Position numbers and translations under genes: made by a program
Shown here: positions 23,901-33,028 of the stretch, in pieces
Layout: each line of letters starts with the position of its first letter
Position numbering within the stretch: the stretch's first letter is position 1
The notes under the pieces: model-generated
Seen by the model: the letters and a program-made list of their open reading frames with translations, nothing else
The model's database searches: none
What the model was told of the DNA's origin: nothing
Source: Gracilinanus agilis
Lineage: Eukaryota
DNA length: 64,000 nucleotides
Assembly (NCBI RefSeq): GCF_016433145.1
Contig: NC_058131.1
Coordinates: 528,880,264-528,944,263 of the forward strand
Direction: 5' to 3'

Positions 23901-26900
23901 TGCCATGCCATAGCCAAGCTTCCTGCTCATAAAGGATTCTCGAGCCATGGCGGACCAGGGTCTTAAACAGAACACAGGACTCAGCCCCGTCTTTACAGTC
24001 CCTTCTGGGAGGGACAAGTCACAATTTCATCCTAGGCAGCAGCTCTAGTGTGTCTTTTCTTTAAATCCTTACCTTCTGTCTTGAAATCAACACCATAGAT
24101 TGGTTGCAAGTTAGACGAGCAGTCAGGGCTCAGAAGTGTCTGAAGTCAGATTTGAACCCAGGACCTCCCCTCCCTAGGCCCAGCTCTCAATCCACTGAGC
24201 CCCCCAGCCGCTTCTAGTGTGTCTCTTCTATTCAAACAGTCTGACCCAGGGGGTAAGCTAGTGGGTGACCCAGAGTCTCTCTTTGCCCCCACAGTATGGT
24301 GAAGTGCTCAACCTGGTCATCTCCAGTAAGAAGACGGGGAGTGCTGTAGTGGAATTTGCTTCCGTCAAGGCTGCCGTGAGTACCAGAGTCTGGAGGTGCA
24401 GTTAAATCACAGGAGGCCTGGGAACCCCTTTGGGACAAACTTATATGACCCTGTGGACCCTGTAACCAGGAGGGTTCAGAATAATGCCTAGTCAAGGCTC
24501 AGGTTCCTCGGAGGAGTCTCCTTCTGCTTAGCTAGATTTCTTCTCTTGGATAGTGGGAGATGCTCAATTCTATATAGAGGCAGAGCCATGAAAATACTTT
24601 TTTGTAAAACCTTTACCTTCTGTCTTAGACTCTGTACTAAGTATCAGTTCCAAAGCAGAACAGCGGTAAGGACTAGGCGTCAAGTGACTTGCCCAGGGTC
24701 ACACAGCTAAGAAATGTCTGGGGTCAGATTTGAACTTGGGGCCTCCCATCTCCAGGCCTGGTTCTCAATTCACTGAGCCACCCAGCTGCCCCCAAGAGAA
24801 TATACTTAGTCTGATTTGTAAAAATATGGTATAAGTGCTACAAATGAGACAGTTTTTGTTGACTATACCAGGACCTTCCTTTTTTCTGCCACTTCTAAGA
24901 GCCATTGCATGTTTCTCTCCACACCCTTATACCCCTGCTCCTTCCTTAGGGTCAAATAACATTCGGTCTACTTTTTTTGAAGGTCATTCTATTCAGACCT
25001 CTGCACAAAGGGCTGGGACCTTGGCCCACCACTTGTTAAAGGTTATCTGGCAATTCTGAGGGACTTAGGACCTCCTGAGAAAGAACTGTTGGAGTCGGAA
25101 TTGAGATGGAAGCATTTTTCGCTCCTTTATTTGGGTTTATGTTTTCAGAGTTTTGGTTTTATAAGATTATTGAGGGGGCATCTGGGTGGCTCAGTGAATT
25201 GAGAACAGGCCCAGAGACAGGAGGTCTTGGGTTCAAATTTGACCTCAGACACTTCCCAGCTGTGTGACCCTGGGCAAGTCACTTAACCCCCATTGTCTAC
25301 CCCTTACCACTCTTTTGCCTTAGAACCAATACACCATATTCTAAAGTGGAGGGTAAGGGTTTTAAAAAAAAGTTAAAAAGAAAAGATTATTCACAAAAAT
25401 GAACAATATGGATATATATTTTGTGTAACAACTCAGATTGAATCGCCTGCCAGCATTGGGAAGGGAAAGGGAAGGGTGGGAGGGAGATAAGTTCAATCAT
25501 ATCATATAGGAAAACTTACATGAGAATTTGTTATTACATGTAGTTGGTAAAAAAAATTAAATACGTTTTTTTAAGAAAGGTTGTCTGGGCTTAAATGGTA
25601 GCACAAGACCAGCAATCTTGTCTCTGTTCCTGAGTTGGTTAGATGGTGTAACAACATGGTCAAACTATTGCCTTGGGCAGGTGCTGGCTGTCAAGAATGA
25701 AGTGGGCCTCGTCAATAACCCCCTGAAGATCTCCTGGCTGGAGGGTCAGCCACAGGGAACAGTGAGCACCGATGGCACCAGCTACTCTGGATTGCCACAG
25801 GTAGGAAGGCACCAGGAACCACGGGCACACCTTCCCCAGGGTCTAGGAAGCTTCCTGGGGAAAAAAGGGGGAAGCAGCTGCTCAGACTTTCCTCAGGGGC
25901 CTTTTCTTATCGGAATGAAGTTCCCTCAGGGAGAACGATGCAGACTGGGATGGATGGTCTTTTAGTACTTAAATTTTTTTTCTCCTTCCATGGTTTTCCA
26001 ATAGGTTTGGTTTCTATTTTTGTGTGTTTTTTACTGTATATAATTATTAGTACAGTAATGTCATATGATATACAAATATTATTGGAGATTATTCACTGTT
26101 CATTTTTCTTGGACATTATAGGCCAGTGGTTTCTAAACTTTTCCAATCATGGACCCCTAATGATAAAAAATTCTTTGTTCATGCTCTCCCCATTAATATA
26201 TTTACTTACAAATTATATACATGTATCACTGTACCAATAATTATATATTTTATATCTATTAAACTTGCATAAATCTAGAATTTTAAAAGGATGAGATGAC
26301 AATGAAATAATGTTTCATCTAGTGCCAATAGTGAGCCACTGGAGCTTATTGAGTAGGGAAAGAATCTGGTCATATCTGCACTTTTAGAAAATTGCTTTGG
26401 CAAGTGTGGGGAGGATGAGATTAGAGAGGGGAGAAAATTGAGGCAGAAAAACCAATTAGGCAGTAATTGCAGAAGTCTAGATGAGAGGTGATGGAGGTCT
26501 AAAACTAGGGTAGTGGCTGTGTAGTAGAGAGGAGGGGATAGATGTGAGAGATGCTGTGGAGTGAGAAAATGACAATCAGGATTTGGTAGTGGTTATTAGA
26601 TATGTGGGATGAAGGAGTAAGAAGGTGCCTGAAGTTATGAACCTGGATGACTGGAAGGATGGTCATCATATGACTTTATCAGTCATAGGGAAGTTTGGAA
26701 GAAGGTTGGTTTTGGTGAAAAGATAATGTAATAAAACAGGCAGCTGGGTGGTTCAGTGGATAGAGCACCAGACCTAGAGATGGAAGGTCATGGGTTCGCC
26801 TTGGACACTTCCTAGCTGCATGACCCTGAGCAAGTTACTTAACCCTCATTGCCTGGCCCTTACCATTCTTCTGCCTTGGTAGTAATACTTGGTATCAATT

Positions 26901-29900
26901 CTAAAGAGCTAAGGTCTGGGTTTTTTTAAAAAAAGAAAGATAACATCAAAAGATCTTCAATGAAGATGACAACCAGTTCATGCTTGCTCATCCCATAATG
27001 AAAAAGGGGGCACTTAGGATATTTACATCACAGCCATCAGGTGGCCTGGGTATAGGAAGAGGCATGCTGGGGTAAGACAGGTTTCCTCACCAGGGGCAAG
27101 AGCTGGCTTAGGTGCATTGGGAGTGGTTAGGTTCTAACTGTCCTGAAGGGCTGACTCCCCATTCAGAGGGGCATGTTGGGAGCTTTCATAATGGAGGCAG
27201 TGGGAGAAGTTGGGGAACATTAGGGGATAAAGCTGAGTGGTTTGTTTGGGGTTATTTCTGGGGATCCTGCCATCGGTACATAGGGCTGCTTCTCTCTGGC
27301 TTATCTGCTCAGAGGAATGGCGGTAGCACCTGCGCCTTAGGTCTGGTGCTTCTGGGAGGGAGCAGAAATCTTAGGGAATCTTTTCTCTTCCTCTTCCTCC
27401 TCCGTCTTGTGAAGAATCCAAACTTTTTGGTCTCAGGACACCTTTATTTTCTAAAAAATGACTAAGGACCTTCTCCTTCGGGTTGTGTGGGTTATGGCTA
27501 TTGATATTTACCATATTAGGAATTAAAACAACTTCTTATTATTATGAAATAGTTTTGACTTCAAGAGGCTCTAGACCACATTTTGAAAACCATTGCTTTA
27601 GAGGAATAAACTGACTTCTGGGCAGAAGATAAGGTTCCTTCCCCTGGCACCTCCCCAGCTAACCAGATGTGCAAGGGATCCAGGAGGGAATTTGGACTCT
27701 CCCTCCTGCTTCCCCAACACTTGCTCTTGGGAGGAAGCCAAAGAACTTTCATTGTGCTCTTGTGGTTGCCTCGGTGTTATGGTGCTATGGTTCTCTCGTT
27801 CTAGAAATCTACTGCTTCCCTCCCATGTTTAATATAGGGAATGAAACCTGTCCATCAGGTGCTAGGGTGCGAATATCTGGACATGGGGAGATGCCTCAGG
27901 AATTTGGGATGGGTGAGGAAATAGTAAGAAGAGGAGAAAGATTGTCCCTAACCCTTGGTGCCCCCTGAGCTCTACCCTGGTGAGTGGAGGGCTTGTGCCC
28001 CTCAGTATGTTGGCACCAGAGGCCCTCCCCCTTAGGCAGCCCTAGGTCAGTTACCTCTGCTGCCCATGACCAACCCAGCAGTGAGAGGGCTGATTCTGTG
28101 CAGTCCTAGACACCCACAGGGACTTGTGAGAAGCAAAGAATTGGTTCTTAAGACAATCCTAGGGTCCTTCCACAAAGGGACGTTATTCTCTTACTTGTAA
28201 GTCTTTGATGTGGCAATAGTGTCCATTTTTATTATTTTTGGCATACACAGAGAGGCCTCTTGGCTTAGGGCACTGGTGTGAAAGCTAACAAGACAAGAGA
28301 AGTTATTTAGATTTACATTTTCTTCTGCTTTCATAAGCTTTGAAGAAGTCATTTTAGGGTCAGTCCAGCTTTAGAGTCTCTTGTTCTAATTCCCCAACCA
28401 CAGCCCAAGGACTGTGTTTTGTTGCCCAATCCAAGGAGCCTGTTTAAGCTGGCAGGTATCCTCCTGAAGGACTTTTCTGGTGATGGGTCTAGGCAGGACA
28501 GGTGCTGGCAGCTTCTCAGTCCTCGCTGGGCACCGTGAGATCATCTGTAGCTCTGCCAAGTGCCAGCCAAGAGTCTGTCGTCACTCCCTCTATTCGGGGC
28601 TGTGATGAGAGAATTCTTCCTTCCCCCCATCTCTTCTAGACCCTGGCAAGAAAGTGTGAATCCCTTCCTCTCCCCTTAATTTCTGCTGAATTTCCCCAGT
28701 GCTTCTAGGGAGCCTTGTGCCAGGTGCTTTGATCTAGCGTCTGTAGCCGCTGATCCTAAGCTCCTCATTCTCAGGGTTGCCCACAGTATCTTCTGCTCTG
28801 AGTCTGATTTGGTGTCTCTGGTGCCACCACCCAGACCTTCCCATCTCGCCCTCTAGACCCTGACACTCATCGCTGTGGCTGAGCTCCTGTTCTAGGATGA
28901 GCTGTTCTCCCCATTTCTTTTCATCTTCCCACCCTCAGTCTGACTCGCTTTCTGCTCTGACTTCAGAGCCACCTTTCTTCTCCAGATCTGCATACCTGCT
29001 GCTTCACCCAGTCCTTGGCTCATTACCCCTTCCCGTTCACATCAGCTCTCCCCAGAGGCTACTCTGGCCCCATACCTCTGTGGGCCTCCCTCTGCCACAT
29101 TCCTGCTGTGTCTCCCACTTGCTGCCTCTGCCAGCCTCTTCCCTGCTGGCTGCCTGCCTGGTCCGGCCTTGTGGCCATAAGGAGCTGTTTCCCTCCATCC
29201 TCCTGTCCAGGAAGTCATTCCCCACTTGTCCTACTGCACCCTGTGAGAGGAGGAGTCTGTGATGAGGCTCGAGCTGGTTCTTATCCCTCCTCCTGCCCTT
29301 CTTACCTCTTCCACTAAATGGGGATAAAGCTCACACTCAGCCTTTGGCAGTCAACAGTTCGGCCATCTCCCCTTGATTTCATCTCTTCCACCCCCCACCC
29401 CTACCCCTCGCACCCCATTCAGGCCCATGGGTCCCTGGGAAATTGCTCTCTCAGGATCTGCAGGACTTCCTCAAGAAGCGATATCCCCAGGTCCACTTTG
29501 AAGGAGAAGAAGGGGTCAGTGACGTCGGTGGGTGCCCCCTGGAGGGGCCTGGCGTCCAGGGAGTCGTCCTCTGAATACTCGTGCAGCGTTCCAGCCAGGG
29601 AGATAGCGGAGGGCAGGGTGGCCGAGTAGGCAGCCGCGTATGCAGGGGAGGGCTCCAGAATGTTGGGACAACTGCTGCTCTCGCGGTAGAGGCGCGGGGG
29701 TTTGGGTGGTGCCAGCAGCGTGGATCTGGGCTGCTCGTCCCCCCACAGGGGCAGGCGGCGGCCGTCCGGCCTTCCCCTCAGCTCCCGGATGACCTCCCGG
29801 TTACTGTATTCCTCATGGTCTCCCCCGGCAGTGCTGGCCTGGCTGAGCACGCTGCCTTGCCGTCGGAGTCGCCGGGGCCTCCCAAGGCTCAGACGTTTGA

Positions 29901-32900
29901 AGAAAGAGTTGTTGCGGAAGGATCCTTTCCGCCATGTCTCCATGGGCCTGAGAAAAGTGGGCCACCGTGGCTGCTCTTGGGAGGCCTCTTGGCCCACAGG
30001 TAGATGGACTCCCAGAGGTTCCGAGGCATGGGAGACAATGTGGGACTGTGGGCAGGACCCCAAGACCGCCTGGGTTTCCTGCTTGAGCCCCTGTGACTCT
30101 GTCCAGTCCAGGATTCCTGCCAGGGCACTGGAGAGCAGACGAGCCACCAAAAGTTGTAGGAAGATGCCCCACTGAGGAGAGGACAGAGCTGGGAGCCCCT
30201 GATAGGGAGCCACTTGGGCCCTTGAGATCCCAAGAGAGAAGACCCAGAGGGAAAAAGGCACTTACTGGAGTGAGAGCTTCTTGGGAAGGACAGGAACACC
30301 CTGGTGTGCTCCCCTGTGTGGGCAGGCCCCAGCCTGAAGGGCACCGTGTCGGGTCCCTGCTCCGTCTCTTCTCTCCTCTTCTCCCATCCAGCAGGTGCGG
30401 GGCTGCTCTCGCTCTGAGGCTGGTGCCTCCCAGGTTCTGATTAGTGGTTTGGCTGCTTGGGCTGGTGTGTGGCAGCCTCGGAGTGTTTTTGTTTTCAGCT
30501 GACTCAGTCAGGTGGGAAGCTGGGTTTCATGCTTTTGGGTAATTGCAGCATCCACATGTAGGGACTGGGGCAGCCGCTCCCGCCAACGCCCAGGGCCAGT
30601 AGTAGGGAGCTAGAAATTCCTCTGGAGGCCTTCCAGCAGGTGAGGCCAGGGCAGCCCTGCTTTATATATCGCTGTGTTGTTTCCATTCTCAGGATTGATC
30701 AGTGGCTTCATGGGGGAAAGCCTGACTTCTGGGTCCCCTGCCAGGAGTACGGGGAGTACAAGGAAGGTAGGGGTTAACTGAAAGGTAAAAGTGTGGCCTG
30801 ATTGTTGGAGGACGAGGAGGGACTTGTTACTAGTGTTAGTGACTCATCATAGCCTGGTGCCAAGCCTTCATTAGCCTGGGCCCACAGACACGGATGGCGG
30901 GAAGGAAGGCAGAAGTGTTAGCGGGAGAGACGAGCTCAGCTCCAGCCCCTGGAGAATTTTCAGATTGAGGGATGGGGGAGAGGAGGGACTCTCTCCACCC
31001 TGCAGGCTTAAGGATATGACCTGGCCTCGTCTTCAGTCTAACATCCTGCCCAGCTGGATCTTAACTTGAATTTTTCCCCGACTCCACTGACAAGACAGGT
31101 TCTGTCAGCATTCTTCGAAGGAAGACACTTCCTTCCTCTGCATTTTACTAAAGAAGCTTTCAGAGGTGGCTTCCTGATAGCAGCAGAGCTAGAATGAGGA
31201 AACAAGATCCCAAGTTAGAATCTGGGACTCTGGGGCAAGATGAACATTTTCAAGTCTTTCCCTTCAAGCTGCCTTGGCCTAGAAACCAAGCTGTCATTTT
31301 GTTGCTCACGGCGTGTGGTGGTTTGTCGGGCCTGATGGTCTCACTGGGCAGCACGTTATCAGTTCTATGTTTAACTATTGGATCTTATTGTCTAGTGGTT
31401 GTGGGCCACAGGACAGCAGGACTAGAAAATGAACCGTAGAAAGTCTGGCCAGGACAGTGGTTCTTCTGGGAGCTGTTATCAGAGGGGGTGGGAAAATCAA
31501 GGTGCAGCCTTCCAGGGCTGGCTCTCAGAAGCCTAGGAGTTAGGCCAGAAGTTATCCCTTACTCACCCTGCACCTCAGCCCAGGTGTGCCTTCCTCCATT
31601 TCCCATGGAACATTGTTCCCTAGTTTTCTGTTTCCTTCAGTAGCAATCTGGCTCTTTGATGTCCACAGGATGGCTTCTTAACAGCATCTTTGCCCAGGTA
31701 GAGGCTGATGGGGCCCTCTGAGCTCTGTGCTGTGGTGTTCTGGAGGGCCGATGATAGAGGGGATTCTCATTCTTTGAAATGGTGATTCTGATCAGATCCC
31801 TCCCACCCCCTGCTGGAGGTGGGAGCAGAACTACTTCAACAGCCCCAAGGGAGGTGGTGCTGTAAATTGTGCTTTGCACCTTTCAGGTGTGGAGTTGTTG
31901 GCTCAGGTAGTTTAATTCCCAAGTTCCACCATCCCCCTGGCCCACTGAGACAGTTCACTATTATGAGCCTGGCATTCATTAAGCCAGCAGAGCCCTGCCC
32001 TGCACTATGTTGAGGAAATGAACCGGACCCATAGTTGTTTTCCTCTCTTGGGTGGAGCTTGTTTCAGAATTTGTTTAAGTTGGGGTGAGCCTTCTTTCCT
32101 TTTTTGCTTCTGCACCCTCACCTGGACACTAATCTAAAAGGCCCAAATGAAGTCCTCTTGGGAAGAAGGGTAACTCTGAAAAAGATGTGGCGTGGAGCAG
32201 GGCCCTCACTGAAGTCTAGAAGGTACCAGATCCCCCTGGCCCCAGAGCCAGCCTCAGGCACACCTTAACCCAGACGATGGCCAGGGTCTTGGCATATTCA
32301 AAGAAGCTGTCTTGACAGTGTATAGTAATAATACAACTTCAGTTTAAATTGCAAAGGGGACCGCTGTGACAGAAGTACAGAGCTCGTAGAGAGAAGGGAT
32401 GAATAAAAGGAATTAGTATATTAAGGGAATGAATAGCAAGTGGTAAAGGCTGGGCTGAGTATGGGAGAATTCCACTCATTAAAAGGAGAAACTGGAACTG
32501 ACTGCACATAGTGATGGGGTACAAGGAAGGGAATAGCTGGGGAAGATCACTGGGTGTATTTCAGCTGGCTTAGAGGGGCAGGAGGCAGGAAGCTTGTTCC
32601 CACAGTTTGGTTTAGAGGTGAGGCTCTTCTGTAATCTCTGCCGAAGACACAGCCACTATGAGAGGTGACTGGTGGACTCGGGATAAACCCCAAAGGCCTA
32701 GGGGAAGAGCCCGGCCACTTCTCATTTCACAGGCATCCTGGATGCTCCTTCTCTCTTTGTCCATTAGGGAAATGGGTTCTTGGCTGGGACCCAGGGGGCT
32801 CACCCTCCAGCTCCAACCAGGCTCGGCCTTGGGCCTTTCTGGGAAGGAGGTCATGCTGGACCTGGTGGTTGCCGCCCCTAACCCTGTCTCCTCTGTGTCC

Positions 32901-33028
32901 CACAGGGCTCCGTGCTGTCAGAGAGGGACTACGAGAGCCTCGTCATGATGCGCATGCGTCAGGCCGCAGAGCGGCAGCAGCTGATCGAGCAGATGCAGAG
33001 GGAGGATGAGGAGGGCCTGCCCACATAG
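17918..33028 (+). CDS. DNAJC17: DnaJ homolog subfamily C member 17 (J domain + RRM), coding exons 2-11; exon 1 lies outside the window
   Basis: Ten GT-AG exons join in phase: 17918-17987, 19940-19998, 20398-20485, 21726-21811, 21966-22062, 22697-22740, 23415-23492, 24295-24375, 25681-25800, 32906-33028. They translate to [23 protein letters not shown]...[35 protein letters not shown], with the J-domain HPD motif. This matches human DNAJC17 as recalled. Confidence 0.97.
18235..19860 (-). mobile_element. Long L2 LINE remnant in DNAJC17 intron 2, with a SINE inserted at ~18490-18678
   Basis: L2 3' terminus near 18235. Minus-strand translations [14 protein letters not shown] and [19 protein letters not shown] resemble the L2/CR1 RT segment STETALxKVTNDL...LDLSAAFDTVDH. 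Confidence 0.75.
19940..19998 (+). CDS. DNAJC17: DNAJC17 exon 3 (59 nt)
   Basis: ctcag|CTGAG...CGG|gtaagg; [20 protein letters not shown]. Confidence 0.96.
20398..20485 (+). CDS. DNAJC17: DNAJC17 exon 4 (88 nt)
   Basis: gccag|GCAGCG...CTTG|gtatgg; [29 protein letters not shown]. Confidence 0.96.
21726..21811 (+). CDS. DNAJC17: DNAJC17 exon 5 (86 nt)
   Basis: cccag|ATCTT...GAG|gtaagc; [29 protein letters not shown]. Confidence 0.95.
21966..22062 (+). CDS. DNAJC17: DNAJC17 exon 6 (97 nt)
   Basis: ggcag|ATTGCA...AGAG|gtaaaa; [32 protein letters not shown]. Confidence 0.95.
22697..22740 (+). CDS. DNAJC17: DNAJC17 exon 7 (44 nt)
   Basis: tctag|GAAAG...AAG|gtgaga; [15 protein letters not shown]. 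Confidence 0.95.
23415..23492 (+). CDS. DNAJC17: DNAJC17 exon 8 (78 nt)
   Basis: tgcag|CTGAAA...AAG|gtctgt (weak donor); [26 protein letters not shown]. Confidence 0.95.
24295..24375 (+). CDS. DNAJC17: DNAJC17 exon 9 (81 nt, RRM)
   Basis: cacag|TATGGT...GCC|gtgagt; [27 protein letters not shown]. Confidence 0.96.
25681..25800 (+). CDS. DNAJC17: DNAJC17 exon 10 (120 nt)
   Basis: gggcag|GTGCTG...CAG|gtagga; [40 protein letters not shown]. Confidence 0.93.
28228..28233 (-). terminator. Probable C15orf62 polyadenylation signal (AATAAA on the minus strand)
   Basis: tttatt on the plus strand; the first such hexamer I found downstream of the stop, implying a ~1.2-kb 3' UTR. Confidence 0.55.
29419..29943 (-). 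CDS. C15orf62: C15orf62 ortholog, 174 aa, single coding exon, nested antisense in DNAJC17 intron 10
   Basis: ATG at 29943 gives [54 protein letters not shown]...[18 protein letters not shown]...[29 protein letters not shown], closely matching human C15orf62 as recalled. The ORF-track start at 30261 is a GTG directly after an in-frame TAA. Confidence 0.93.
   Translation of the reverse strand: METWRKGSFRNNSFFKRLSLGRPRRLRRQGSVLSQASTAGGDHEEYSNREVIRELRGRPDGRRLPLWGDEQPRSTLLAPPKPPRLYRESSSCPNILEPSPAYAAAYSATLPSAISLAGTLHEYSEDDSLDARPLQGAPTDVTDPFFSFKVDLGISLLEEVLQILREQFPRDPWA
30661..30668 (-). promoter_or_regulatory. TATA box (TATATAAA) of C15orf62; AP-1 TGACTCA sites at 30500-30506 and 30840-30846
   Basis: Minus-strand GATATATAAAG followed by GC-rich sequence, ~720 nt upstream of the ATG; predicts a TSS near 30635. 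Confidence 0.6.
32906..33028 (+). CDS. DNAJC17: DNAJC17 exon 11 (last coding exon, TAG stop)
   Basis: cacag|GGCTCC...ACATAG; [40 protein letters not shown]. Confidence 0.96.

Follow-up and report, generated by a model that had tools for sequence, protein, structure and literature searches.

A conserved donor-like motif and a species-private upstream ATG in the probably non-coding leader of C15orf62 in Gracilinanus agilis

What looks like a hidden N-terminal extension of C15orf62 in the marsupial Gracilinanus agilis appears to be a coincidence in a non-coding leader, because the ATG that would open it occurs in one species and its frame is not kept in relatives. We hold with high confidence that the leader is non-coding, that the upstream ATG is private to the species and that the 174-aa product is the conserved protein. 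On this reading the conserved product would start at 29943, with all sequence upstream of it serving as non-coding leader, and the sole constrained element of that variable leader would be a donor-like motif, CCA/GTAAGTG, at 30266/30265 (the slash marks the putative exon-intron border). Positions refer to the window, the whole 64,000-nt stretch of G. agilis DNA that was analysed.

The C15orf62 gene and its product

29419..29943, minus strand: coding sequence of the C15orf62 orthologue, a single coding exon translated into 174 aa plus stop, BORG_CEP family

Family profile, full-length similarity and genomic setting all identify this gene as C15orf62. A Pfam scan of the 174-aa product places BORG_CEP (PF14957) above the gathering score, at 26.5 bits for residues 121-164 where 25 is required; the margin is narrow, and of the profile the C-terminal part alone is matched. 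The product is 95% identical to those of Dromiciops and Petaurus over 100% of its length, and 79-87% identical to eutherian homologues. Its coding sequence is nested antisense within an intron of DNAJC17, as it is in other species; in rabbit and in all marsupials examined, the strand opposite C15orf62 carries a DnaJ gene that extends across the locus. All 12 annotated marsupial orthologues in the protein collection are 174 aa long. The sole longer marsupial protein there is a 280-aa ORF read off an unspliced Monodelphis RNA contig, and the collection holds no spliced or N-terminally extended marsupial C15orf62 product. We take C15orf62 to be a single-exon gene in annotation; by its titles and abstracts, the literature on it consists of gene lists that nowhere address gene structure or isoforms.

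The upstream ATG and its reading frame

30392..30668, minus strand: conserved promoter-like block, with TATATAAAG at 30668-30660 and the AP-1 site TGACTGAGTCAGCT at 30510-30497
30262..30387, minus strand: upstream open reading frame (uORF) of 41 codons, in Gracilinanus only, with its ATG at 30387-30385 and its TAA at 30264-30262 inside the donor motif
30027..30029, minus strand: out-of-frame leader ATG, present among the species compared only in the two didelphids

An earlier note on this DNA had proposed that a 318-nt intron hidden in the leader turns the uORF into an in-frame N-terminal extension, and its description of the letters proved accurate: the ATG at 30387, the TAA, the donor, the acceptor, the 318 nt, the 216-aa product and the ATG at 30029 were all verified, and the minus-strand frame from 30507 to 29419 is open except for a single stop, the TAA at 30264-30262. 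The interval 30265-29948 is 318 nt long, a multiple of three, and 122 nt joined to 4 nt make 42 codons which, with the 174 of the main frame, predict a fusion of 216 aa. In unspliced RNA, ATG 30387 would open the 41-codon uORF; position -3 of this ATG is T and position +4 is G, and Pfam gives no match to the 41-aa peptide. The ORF that begins at ATG 30029 runs for 46 codons and overlaps the main ATG in Gracilinanus, and for 5 codons in Monodelphis.

We reject the open leader frame as coding evidence, given that the three minus-strand frames of the 564-nt leader contain 1, 3 and 0 stops and that 12% of dinucleotide shuffles leave at most one stop in the main frame (P = 0.12), while 34% do so in some frame. 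With stops this scarce in every frame of the leader, a coincidental in-frame join is easily obtained, and the join across the 318-nt GT...AG interval would be a coincidence of this kind. A depletion of upstream ATGs, considered as a sign that the interval stays in the mature mRNA, was dropped as non-significant against dinucleotide shuffles in every species.

Comparison of the leader across ten therians (seven marsupials plus rabbit, pangolin and Mastomys) bears directly on whether the extension is coding. ATG 30387 has no homologue in any of the six other marsupials or in rabbit, the site reading ACG in Monodelphis and GTG, GTA or a deletion elsewhere, and an in-phase leader ATG is lacking in every species compared with Gracilinanus, among them pangolin and Mastomys. 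The frame is likewise lost: between ATG and donor, Monodelphis differs from Gracilinanus by indels of 10, 8 and 18 nt, ~33 nt are inserted in Australidelphians, and Dromiciops, koala and tammar have an in-phase TGA 11 codons ahead of the donor. The five marsupials in which the acceptor AG persists have donor-to-acceptor intervals of 318, 318, 298, 339 and 308 nt, a distance of 0, 1 or 2 modulo 3 depending on species. Neither start codon nor frame is conserved, and relatives have no extended product in the protein collection. The earlier note had itself listed such losses in other marsupials as refuting its model, and the alignments show the ATG, the frame and the acceptor each lost there; the upstream in-frame ATG, claimed to begin an N-terminal extension, would instead be a recent one, private to Gracilinanus agilis.

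Eutherian orthologues have in-frame leader ORFs of their own, non-homologous and reaching 207 aa in rat, 190 in rabbit, 213-225 in Bison and 217 in bat. Since these ORFs are many and non-homologous, N-terminal leader extensions seem to arise often without being conserved. The case resembles lineage-specific mammalian upstream ATGs and uORFs, both in its single-species ATG of weak context with a short ORF ending before the main start and in the frequent turnover of in-frame leader ORFs among C15orf62 orthologues; we see no notable difference from them, the uORF stop here happening to be the TAA of GTAAGT. With N-terminal proteoforms produced by alternative 5' splicing it shares that removal of 318 nt would, on paper, join an upstream ATG in frame, whereas known functional proteoforms keep start and frame across species and Gracilinanus's nearest relative has lost both.

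Upstream of the uORF, the promoter-like block has a column identity of ~0.7-1.0 (mostly at least 0.85) across the seven marsupials, and over 197 nt it is ~76% identical to rabbit, where the AP-1 site stands at an equal distance from the ATG; the AP-1 site is found in pangolin and Mastomys too. Conservation drops sharply at 30391, which puts ATG 30387 4 nt beyond the block edge. Because conservation falls 4 nt upstream of this ATG, transcription may start at or after it.

The donor-like motif and candidate acceptors

30253..30276, minus strand: conserved island CTCTCACTCCA/GTAAGTGC, resembling a 5' splice site, with GT at 30265-30264
29948..29962, minus strand: acceptor of the 318-nt interval, TTTTCTCAG/GCCC, a pyrimidine tract and AG at 29949-29948, exon start 29947
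30172..30190, minus strand: alternative acceptor GCTCTGTCCTCTCCTCAG/TGGG, AG at 30173-30172, exon start 30171, giving a 94-nt intron

In the window the donor motif reads CTCCA/GTAAGT, with the exon end at 30266 and the uORF TAA within it. Amid a poorly conserved leader, CCA/GTAAGTG is unchanged in seven of seven marsupials, and mean pairwise column identity in the island is 0.93 and 0.83 versus 0.3-0.6 in its flanks. The eutherian form is GTAAGTG in rabbit and pangolin and GTGAGTA in Mastomys; each of the ten therians examined thereby has GTRAGT, at 296-343 nt before the main ATG, the sole hexamer change being A to G at +3 in Mastomys. The motif agrees perfectly with the 5' splice-site consensus on its intron side and departs from it on the exon side, CCA. 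In every species the site ranks as the best donor of the leader by a rough consensus matrix, whose splice-site scores are usable for ranking only. The window contains 26 copies of GTAAGT where 22.7 are expected, and on sequence comparison it is through cross-species conservation alone that the motif exceeds chance. Its presence in all ten therians points to either a real 5' splice site or a U1-binding site. Action of the island on the DNAJC17 strand is unlikely to account for conservation in both groups, the reverse-complement GGA/GTGAGA being present in marsupials and absent from eutherians.

Because the motif is kept in marsupials and eutherians alike, the leader plausibly contains a real 5' splice site, and we lean towards regarding it as the true donor of a 5'UTR intron that is removed facultatively; what probability remains would go to a role outside splicing, whether in binding U1 snRNP or as an element at the DNA level. 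Of the hidden intron proposed earlier, the donor half is supported, with the motif kept in 10 of 10 therians, and the ATG, the frame, the acceptor and the extended product are not.

The acceptor side is less constrained. At the end of the 318-nt interval the minus strand reads CCCACTTTTCTCAG/GCCC followed by the main ATG at 29943. The AG, at -5/-4 from that ATG, is kept in five of seven marsupials, lost in Sarcophilus (CGG), Macrotis (TGG), rabbit (GGG) and pangolin (CGG) and displaced in Mastomys, and overall is missing at the homologous position in five of the ten species; murids echo an ATG-adjacent acceptor in CTCTCAG/GAGCTCC ATG. Besides lacking this conservation, the site ranks third in Gracilinanus. 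The acceptor of the 94-nt intron has the top score in Gracilinanus, Monodelphis, Dromiciops and koala and lies at the beginning of a conserved island (30187-30131), and most species have a homologous or neighbouring pyrimidine tract and AG 79-108 nt downstream of the donor; an acceptor at 30129-30128, giving a 138-nt intron, ranks second in Gracilinanus. If the leader is spliced, 30173-30172 would be the best-scoring candidate acceptor, 30129-30128 the second and 29949-29948 the third, and use of 29949-29948, given splicing, is doubtful. The sequences themselves show the pattern of conservation, the loss of ATG, frame and acceptor in relatives and RNA contigs without splicing; what the donor does, where transcription starts and which acceptor is used are features that we infer.

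Alternative readings and their meaning

A facultative intron has to be weighed against a leader that is never spliced, a substantial minority possibility in our estimation, in which GTRAGT and the ~30 nt after it would act as a U1 snRNP site or a DNA-level regulatory site; a U1 site could support transcription or suppress premature polyadenylation of this single-exon gene. All 28 contigs from four species (one Monodelphis, seven rabbit, ten pangolin and ten Mastomys) lack a leader junction, which agrees with this alternative, but their non-splicing is weak evidence because they were chosen for the longest flanks, favouring DNAJC17 pre-mRNA or intron-retaining assemblies, and come from samples that may not express C15orf62. 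A canonical junction between DNAJC17 exons marks the Monodelphis contig as RNA-derived, and this contig follows the genome without a break across the proposed intron; the rabbit contigs are colinear with their genome, and those of pangolin and Mastomys were compared only among themselves. Of the contigs, four from rabbit and one from pangolin stop at DNAJC17 exon boundaries and none stops at the GTRAGT of C15orf62, and ORFs in 41 rat contigs read through the ATG-adjacent region. A never-spliced leader also fits the absence of an acceptor at a fixed conserved position, conservation that continues ~30 nt past the hexamer and the invariance of the non-consensus exon-side CCA. Splicing, by contrast, would account for the A to G change at +3 in Mastomys, precisely the change that a 5' splice site tolerates, and for the pyrimidine tract and AG found 79-108 nt downstream in most species; furthermore, a single rat protein is represented by two curated RefSeq records (NP_001386775 and NP_001386776), which hints at 5'UTR transcript variants. 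BORG/CDC42EP relatives usually carry a non-coding first exon, and this too speaks for an intron. Like their 5'UTR introns, C15orf62 has a donor-like motif that precedes a single coding exon by 300-340 nt and is set below a conserved promoter-like block and a short variable segment, and its product matches BORG_CEP; unlike those introns, it has no junction in the 28 contigs and an unconserved acceptor position. The resemblance to unspliced U1 snRNP sites (telescripting, promoter-proximal stimulation) is an inferential one, through the conserved GTRAGT and a leader that appears unspliced in every assembly examined. Poly(A) signals at contig ends, considered as a means of separating mRNA from pre-mRNA, were uninformative on C15orf62 expression, the ends being DNAJC17 exon boundaries or low-complexity breaks, and a search of 29000-31200 for known RNA families gave two sub-threshold lncRNA matches (21.5 and 12.2 bits, the gathering score being 90).

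Readings that retain a coding extension are far less probable. It is very unlikely that the 318-nt intron is real and regulated in G. agilis alone, yielding a 216-aa protein whose acidic start alters localisation: the arithmetic is exact, the donor motif is conserved, an AG with a pyrimidine tract is found in Gracilinanus and four other marsupials, and splicing would also delete the out-of-frame ATG 30029, but the acceptor comes third after those of the 94-nt and 138-nt introns, a pyrimidine stands at -3 of the upstream ATG, the extension is unconserved even in Monodelphis, whose RNA contig, that of the closest relative, is unspliced, no extended marsupial protein is in the collection and the transcription start may sit at or after the ATG, conservation falling 4 nt upstream. 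We give a marginally slimmer chance to an unannotated 5'UTR intron, with donor and ~30 nt conserved across marsupials and eutherians, to which a new exon 1 ATG in G. agilis would have added a 216-aa splice form. As for a missed ancient coding exon, conserved and unannotated in all marsupials, the open frame that would favour it is limited to the two didelphids; the missing start codon, non-3n indels, in-phase stops in three species, unconserved frame and a 41-aa peptide without a Pfam match leave it practically no probability, and we consider it refuted by the alignments. The splice switch that had been suggested to set both the amount and the location of the protein found no support, with ATG, frame and acceptor lost in relatives.

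For the preferred reading, a species-private ATG in a non-coding leader, the consequence is that an unsupported isoform model is removed for a poorly studied BORG-like protein. In-frame upstream ATGs turn over in mammalian C15orf62 leaders, which advises caution before such ORFs are called isoforms; were the spliced 216-aa form of G. agilis true, it would be a snapshot of an N-terminal extension being born. The lead that an intron or a U1 site offers is ordinary leader biology: the conserved motif resembling a 5' splice site may mark a 5'UTR intron missing from annotation or a U1 site that works without splicing, with a possible effect on the amount of C15orf62 protein in either case.

A putative intron in the C15orf62 leader

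C15orf62 is housed in a DNAJC17 intron in antisense orientation, and its 174-aa product matches the Pfam BORG_CEP family marginally, though above threshold (26.5 bits, cut-off 25), and is 95% identical to the Dromiciops and Petaurus proteins that NCBI names 'C15orf62 homolog, mitochondrial'; at the level of the locus, Monodelphis and Gracilinanus share only ~87% identity. The earlier note proposed that a hidden 318-nt intron in the leader (the non-coding stretch upstream of the main ATG), once removed, fuses an upstream ATG in frame to the main ORF. A base-level check of the minus strand recovered every feature it listed:

30387, minus strand: upstream ATG
From 30387, minus strand: upstream ORF of 41 codons, stop TAA at 30264-30262
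Exon start 29947, minus strand: proposed acceptor TTTTCTCAG|GCCC, right upstream of the main ATG
29943-29419, minus strand: main ORF, 174 aa

The TAA falls within the donor-like CCA|GTAAGT, which lies 318 nt from the proposed acceptor, and joining the two sites gives 42 + 174 = 216 codons. For one sequence taken by itself, none of these features is unexpected. The three sense frames of the 564-nt leader hold 1, 3 and 0 stops, so few that a random upstream ATG would be in frame and open with a chance that we estimate from the stop and shuffle counts at ~1/4; the main frame is equally open in 12% of dinucleotide-preserving shuffles, and the window contains 26 copies of GTAAGT, with 22.7 expected.

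Loss of the ATG, frame and acceptor across mammals

We aligned the leaders of seven marsupials (Gracilinanus, Monodelphis, Dromiciops, Sarcophilus, koala, tammar and bilby) with those of the rabbit genome and of assembled contigs from rabbit, pangolin and a Mastomys-like rodent. The ATG at 30387 occurs in Gracilinanus only among the marsupials, its position being occupied by ACG in Monodelphis, GTG in Dromiciops and GTA in koala and bilby and deleted in Sarcophilus and tammar, and an in-phase ATG is absent from all the eutherians examined (rabbit, pangolin, Mastomys-like rodent). Between this position and the donor, Monodelphis differs from Gracilinanus by indels of 10, 8 and 18 nt and australidelphians carry a ~33 nt insertion; in Dromiciops, koala and tammar a TGA lies in phase 11 codons upstream of the donor. 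The acceptor AG, at -5/-4, is replaced in Sarcophilus (CGG), bilby (TGG), rabbit (GGG) and pangolin (CGG), and the five marsupials that keep it have donor-acceptor distances of 318, 318, 298, 339 and 308 nt (0, 0, 1, 0 and 2 mod 3). The ATG is lost in all six other marsupials, and the frame and the acceptor in some of them, the very loss that the earlier note had named as refuting its model.

Each of the 12 named marsupial orthologues has 174 aa. Their 90% cluster contains just one further member, a 280-aa ORF encoded on a Logan contig (L002, run SRR12097547) with 99.8% identity to the Monodelphis genome. A canonical DNAJC17 junction (AAG|GTGTGT ... CACAG|GG) spanning 1.9 kb links the first 27 nt of this contig to the rest, so the contig is RNA-derived, and it is colinear with the genome across the proposed donor, intron and acceptor. 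Seven rabbit contigs are likewise colinear with the rabbit genome; the ends of four of them, and of one from pangolin, fall precisely on a DNAJC17 exon boundary. Real junctions thus did cause breaks in the assembly, but no such break occurs at the C15orf62 donor in these rabbit and pangolin contigs. The ten contigs from pangolin and the ten Mastomys-like ones show mutual colinearity, by contig-to-contig comparison only. As evidence against splicing these unspliced contigs are weak, since those examined had the most flanking DNA, which favours pre-mRNA, C15orf62 may not be expressed in the samples, and the RNA comes from Monodelphis, rabbit, pangolin and the Mastomys-like rodent, not Gracilinanus.

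Eutherians offer a parallel. Rat (207 aa, found on 41 Logan contigs), rabbit (190 aa), murids (181 aa), Bison (213-225 aa) and a bat (217 aa) carry in-frame N-terminal leader ORFs of unrelated sequence, with non-homologous extensions of 6-39 codons (orthologue proteins P0074, P0017, P0129-P0131 and P0147); where a check was possible, these ORFs follow the unspliced leader colinearly. 'Extensions' of this kind come up again and again without being conserved, and Gracilinanus is one more case. The 216-aa isoform, and the splice switch built on it, are unsupported, with a private ATG, a frame and acceptor that are not kept, and marsupial orthologues of 174 aa.

Separately, two curated rat RefSeq records (NP_001386775.1 and NP_001386776.1, P0070, Rattus norvegicus) share one identical 175-aa sequence, implying two transcript variants whose differences lie beyond the coding sequence; the pair is a lead, hinting at a real alternative 5'UTR. 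Four Logan proteins, P0038, P0039, P0041 and P0068, resemble the human orthologue. At the other end of the protein, predicted isoforms P0022, P0026, P0107, P0108 and P0128 (Bos, Kogia, Saccopteryx, Sus) diverge directly past ...REQFP, consistent with a putative donor made up of the eutherian codons AGT GAG; the marsupial codons at this point, AGG GAC, provide no such donor.

A conserved donor-like motif and its possible partners

The donor-like motif itself is kept. It sits in an island at 30276-30253 (identity 0.93 and 0.83 in the marsupial profile), reads CCA|GTAAGTG unchanged in six marsupials and GCA|GTAAGTG in tammar, and recurs as TCC|GTAAGTG in rabbit, CCA|GTAAGTG in pangolin and CCT|GTGAGTA in the Mastomys-like rodent, lying 296-343 nt upstream of the main ATG in every species with ~30 nt of conserved sequence downstream. 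Within the hexamer only +3 varies, from A to G, and at this position 5' splice sites accept either purine. The conserved GT is the top-scoring leader donor in 10 of 10 species, by a rough consensus matrix valid for ranking only. On this conservation we read the motif as a probable 5' splice site or U1 binding site, and lean slightly towards its actually being spliced.

For the case that it is spliced, the same matrix ranks the proposed acceptor third in Gracilinanus:

Exon start 30171, minus strand: acceptor 1, GCTCTGTCCTCTCCTCAG|T, intron 94 nt, score 6.1
Exon start 30127, minus strand: acceptor 2, intron 138 nt, score 4.4
Exon start 29947, minus strand: acceptor 3, the site of the earlier note, intron 318 nt, score 4.2

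A pyrimidine tract and AG lie 79-108 nt downstream of the donor in most species. Removal of the 94-nt intron would give no protein extension from the Gracilinanus upstream ATG, which would instead open a ~135-codon ORF that runs across the main ATG in another frame as far as a stop at 29889. A second conserved island (30131-30187, minus strand; identity 0.69-0.89 save one window at 0.49) lies within the proposed intron and opens with the alternative acceptor of the 94-nt intron, CTCCTCAG|TGGG; Sarcophilus and bilby are without its AG, yet retain TTTCAG ~28 nt further on.

Upstream, a conserved 270-nt block (30392-30668, minus strand; 30665-30392 in the identity profile) starts with TATATAAAG (30668-30660), contains an AP-2-like GCCCTGGGC and an AP-1 site TGACTGAGTCAGCT (30510-30497), and shows identity of ~0.7-1.0, mostly at least 0.85, among seven marsupials and ~76% to rabbit. 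Identity drops abruptly to 0.3-0.7 at 30391, 4 nt upstream of the upstream ATG. The block is probably the C15orf62 promoter or first exon.

On the opposite strand, DNAJC17 exons flank the nested gene (~25680-25745, ~30744-30915 and ~32907-32975, plus strand). An RNA contig proves the Monodelphis DNAJC17 donor GGCAGAAG|GTGTGT; the Gracilinanus sequence at 30908-30922 (plus strand) is GGCAGAAGTGTTAGC, 3 bases shorter, which requires a one-base shift of the homologous donor. In reverse complement (plus strand 30259-30276), the 18-mer conserved in marsupials is CACTTACTGGA|GTGAGAG and so is donor-like on the DNAJC17 strand as well, a resemblance that eutherians do not share.

What remains of interest would be the conserved donor-like motif, a modest lead; the case of the C15orf62 leader is otherwise one of ordinary leader biology.
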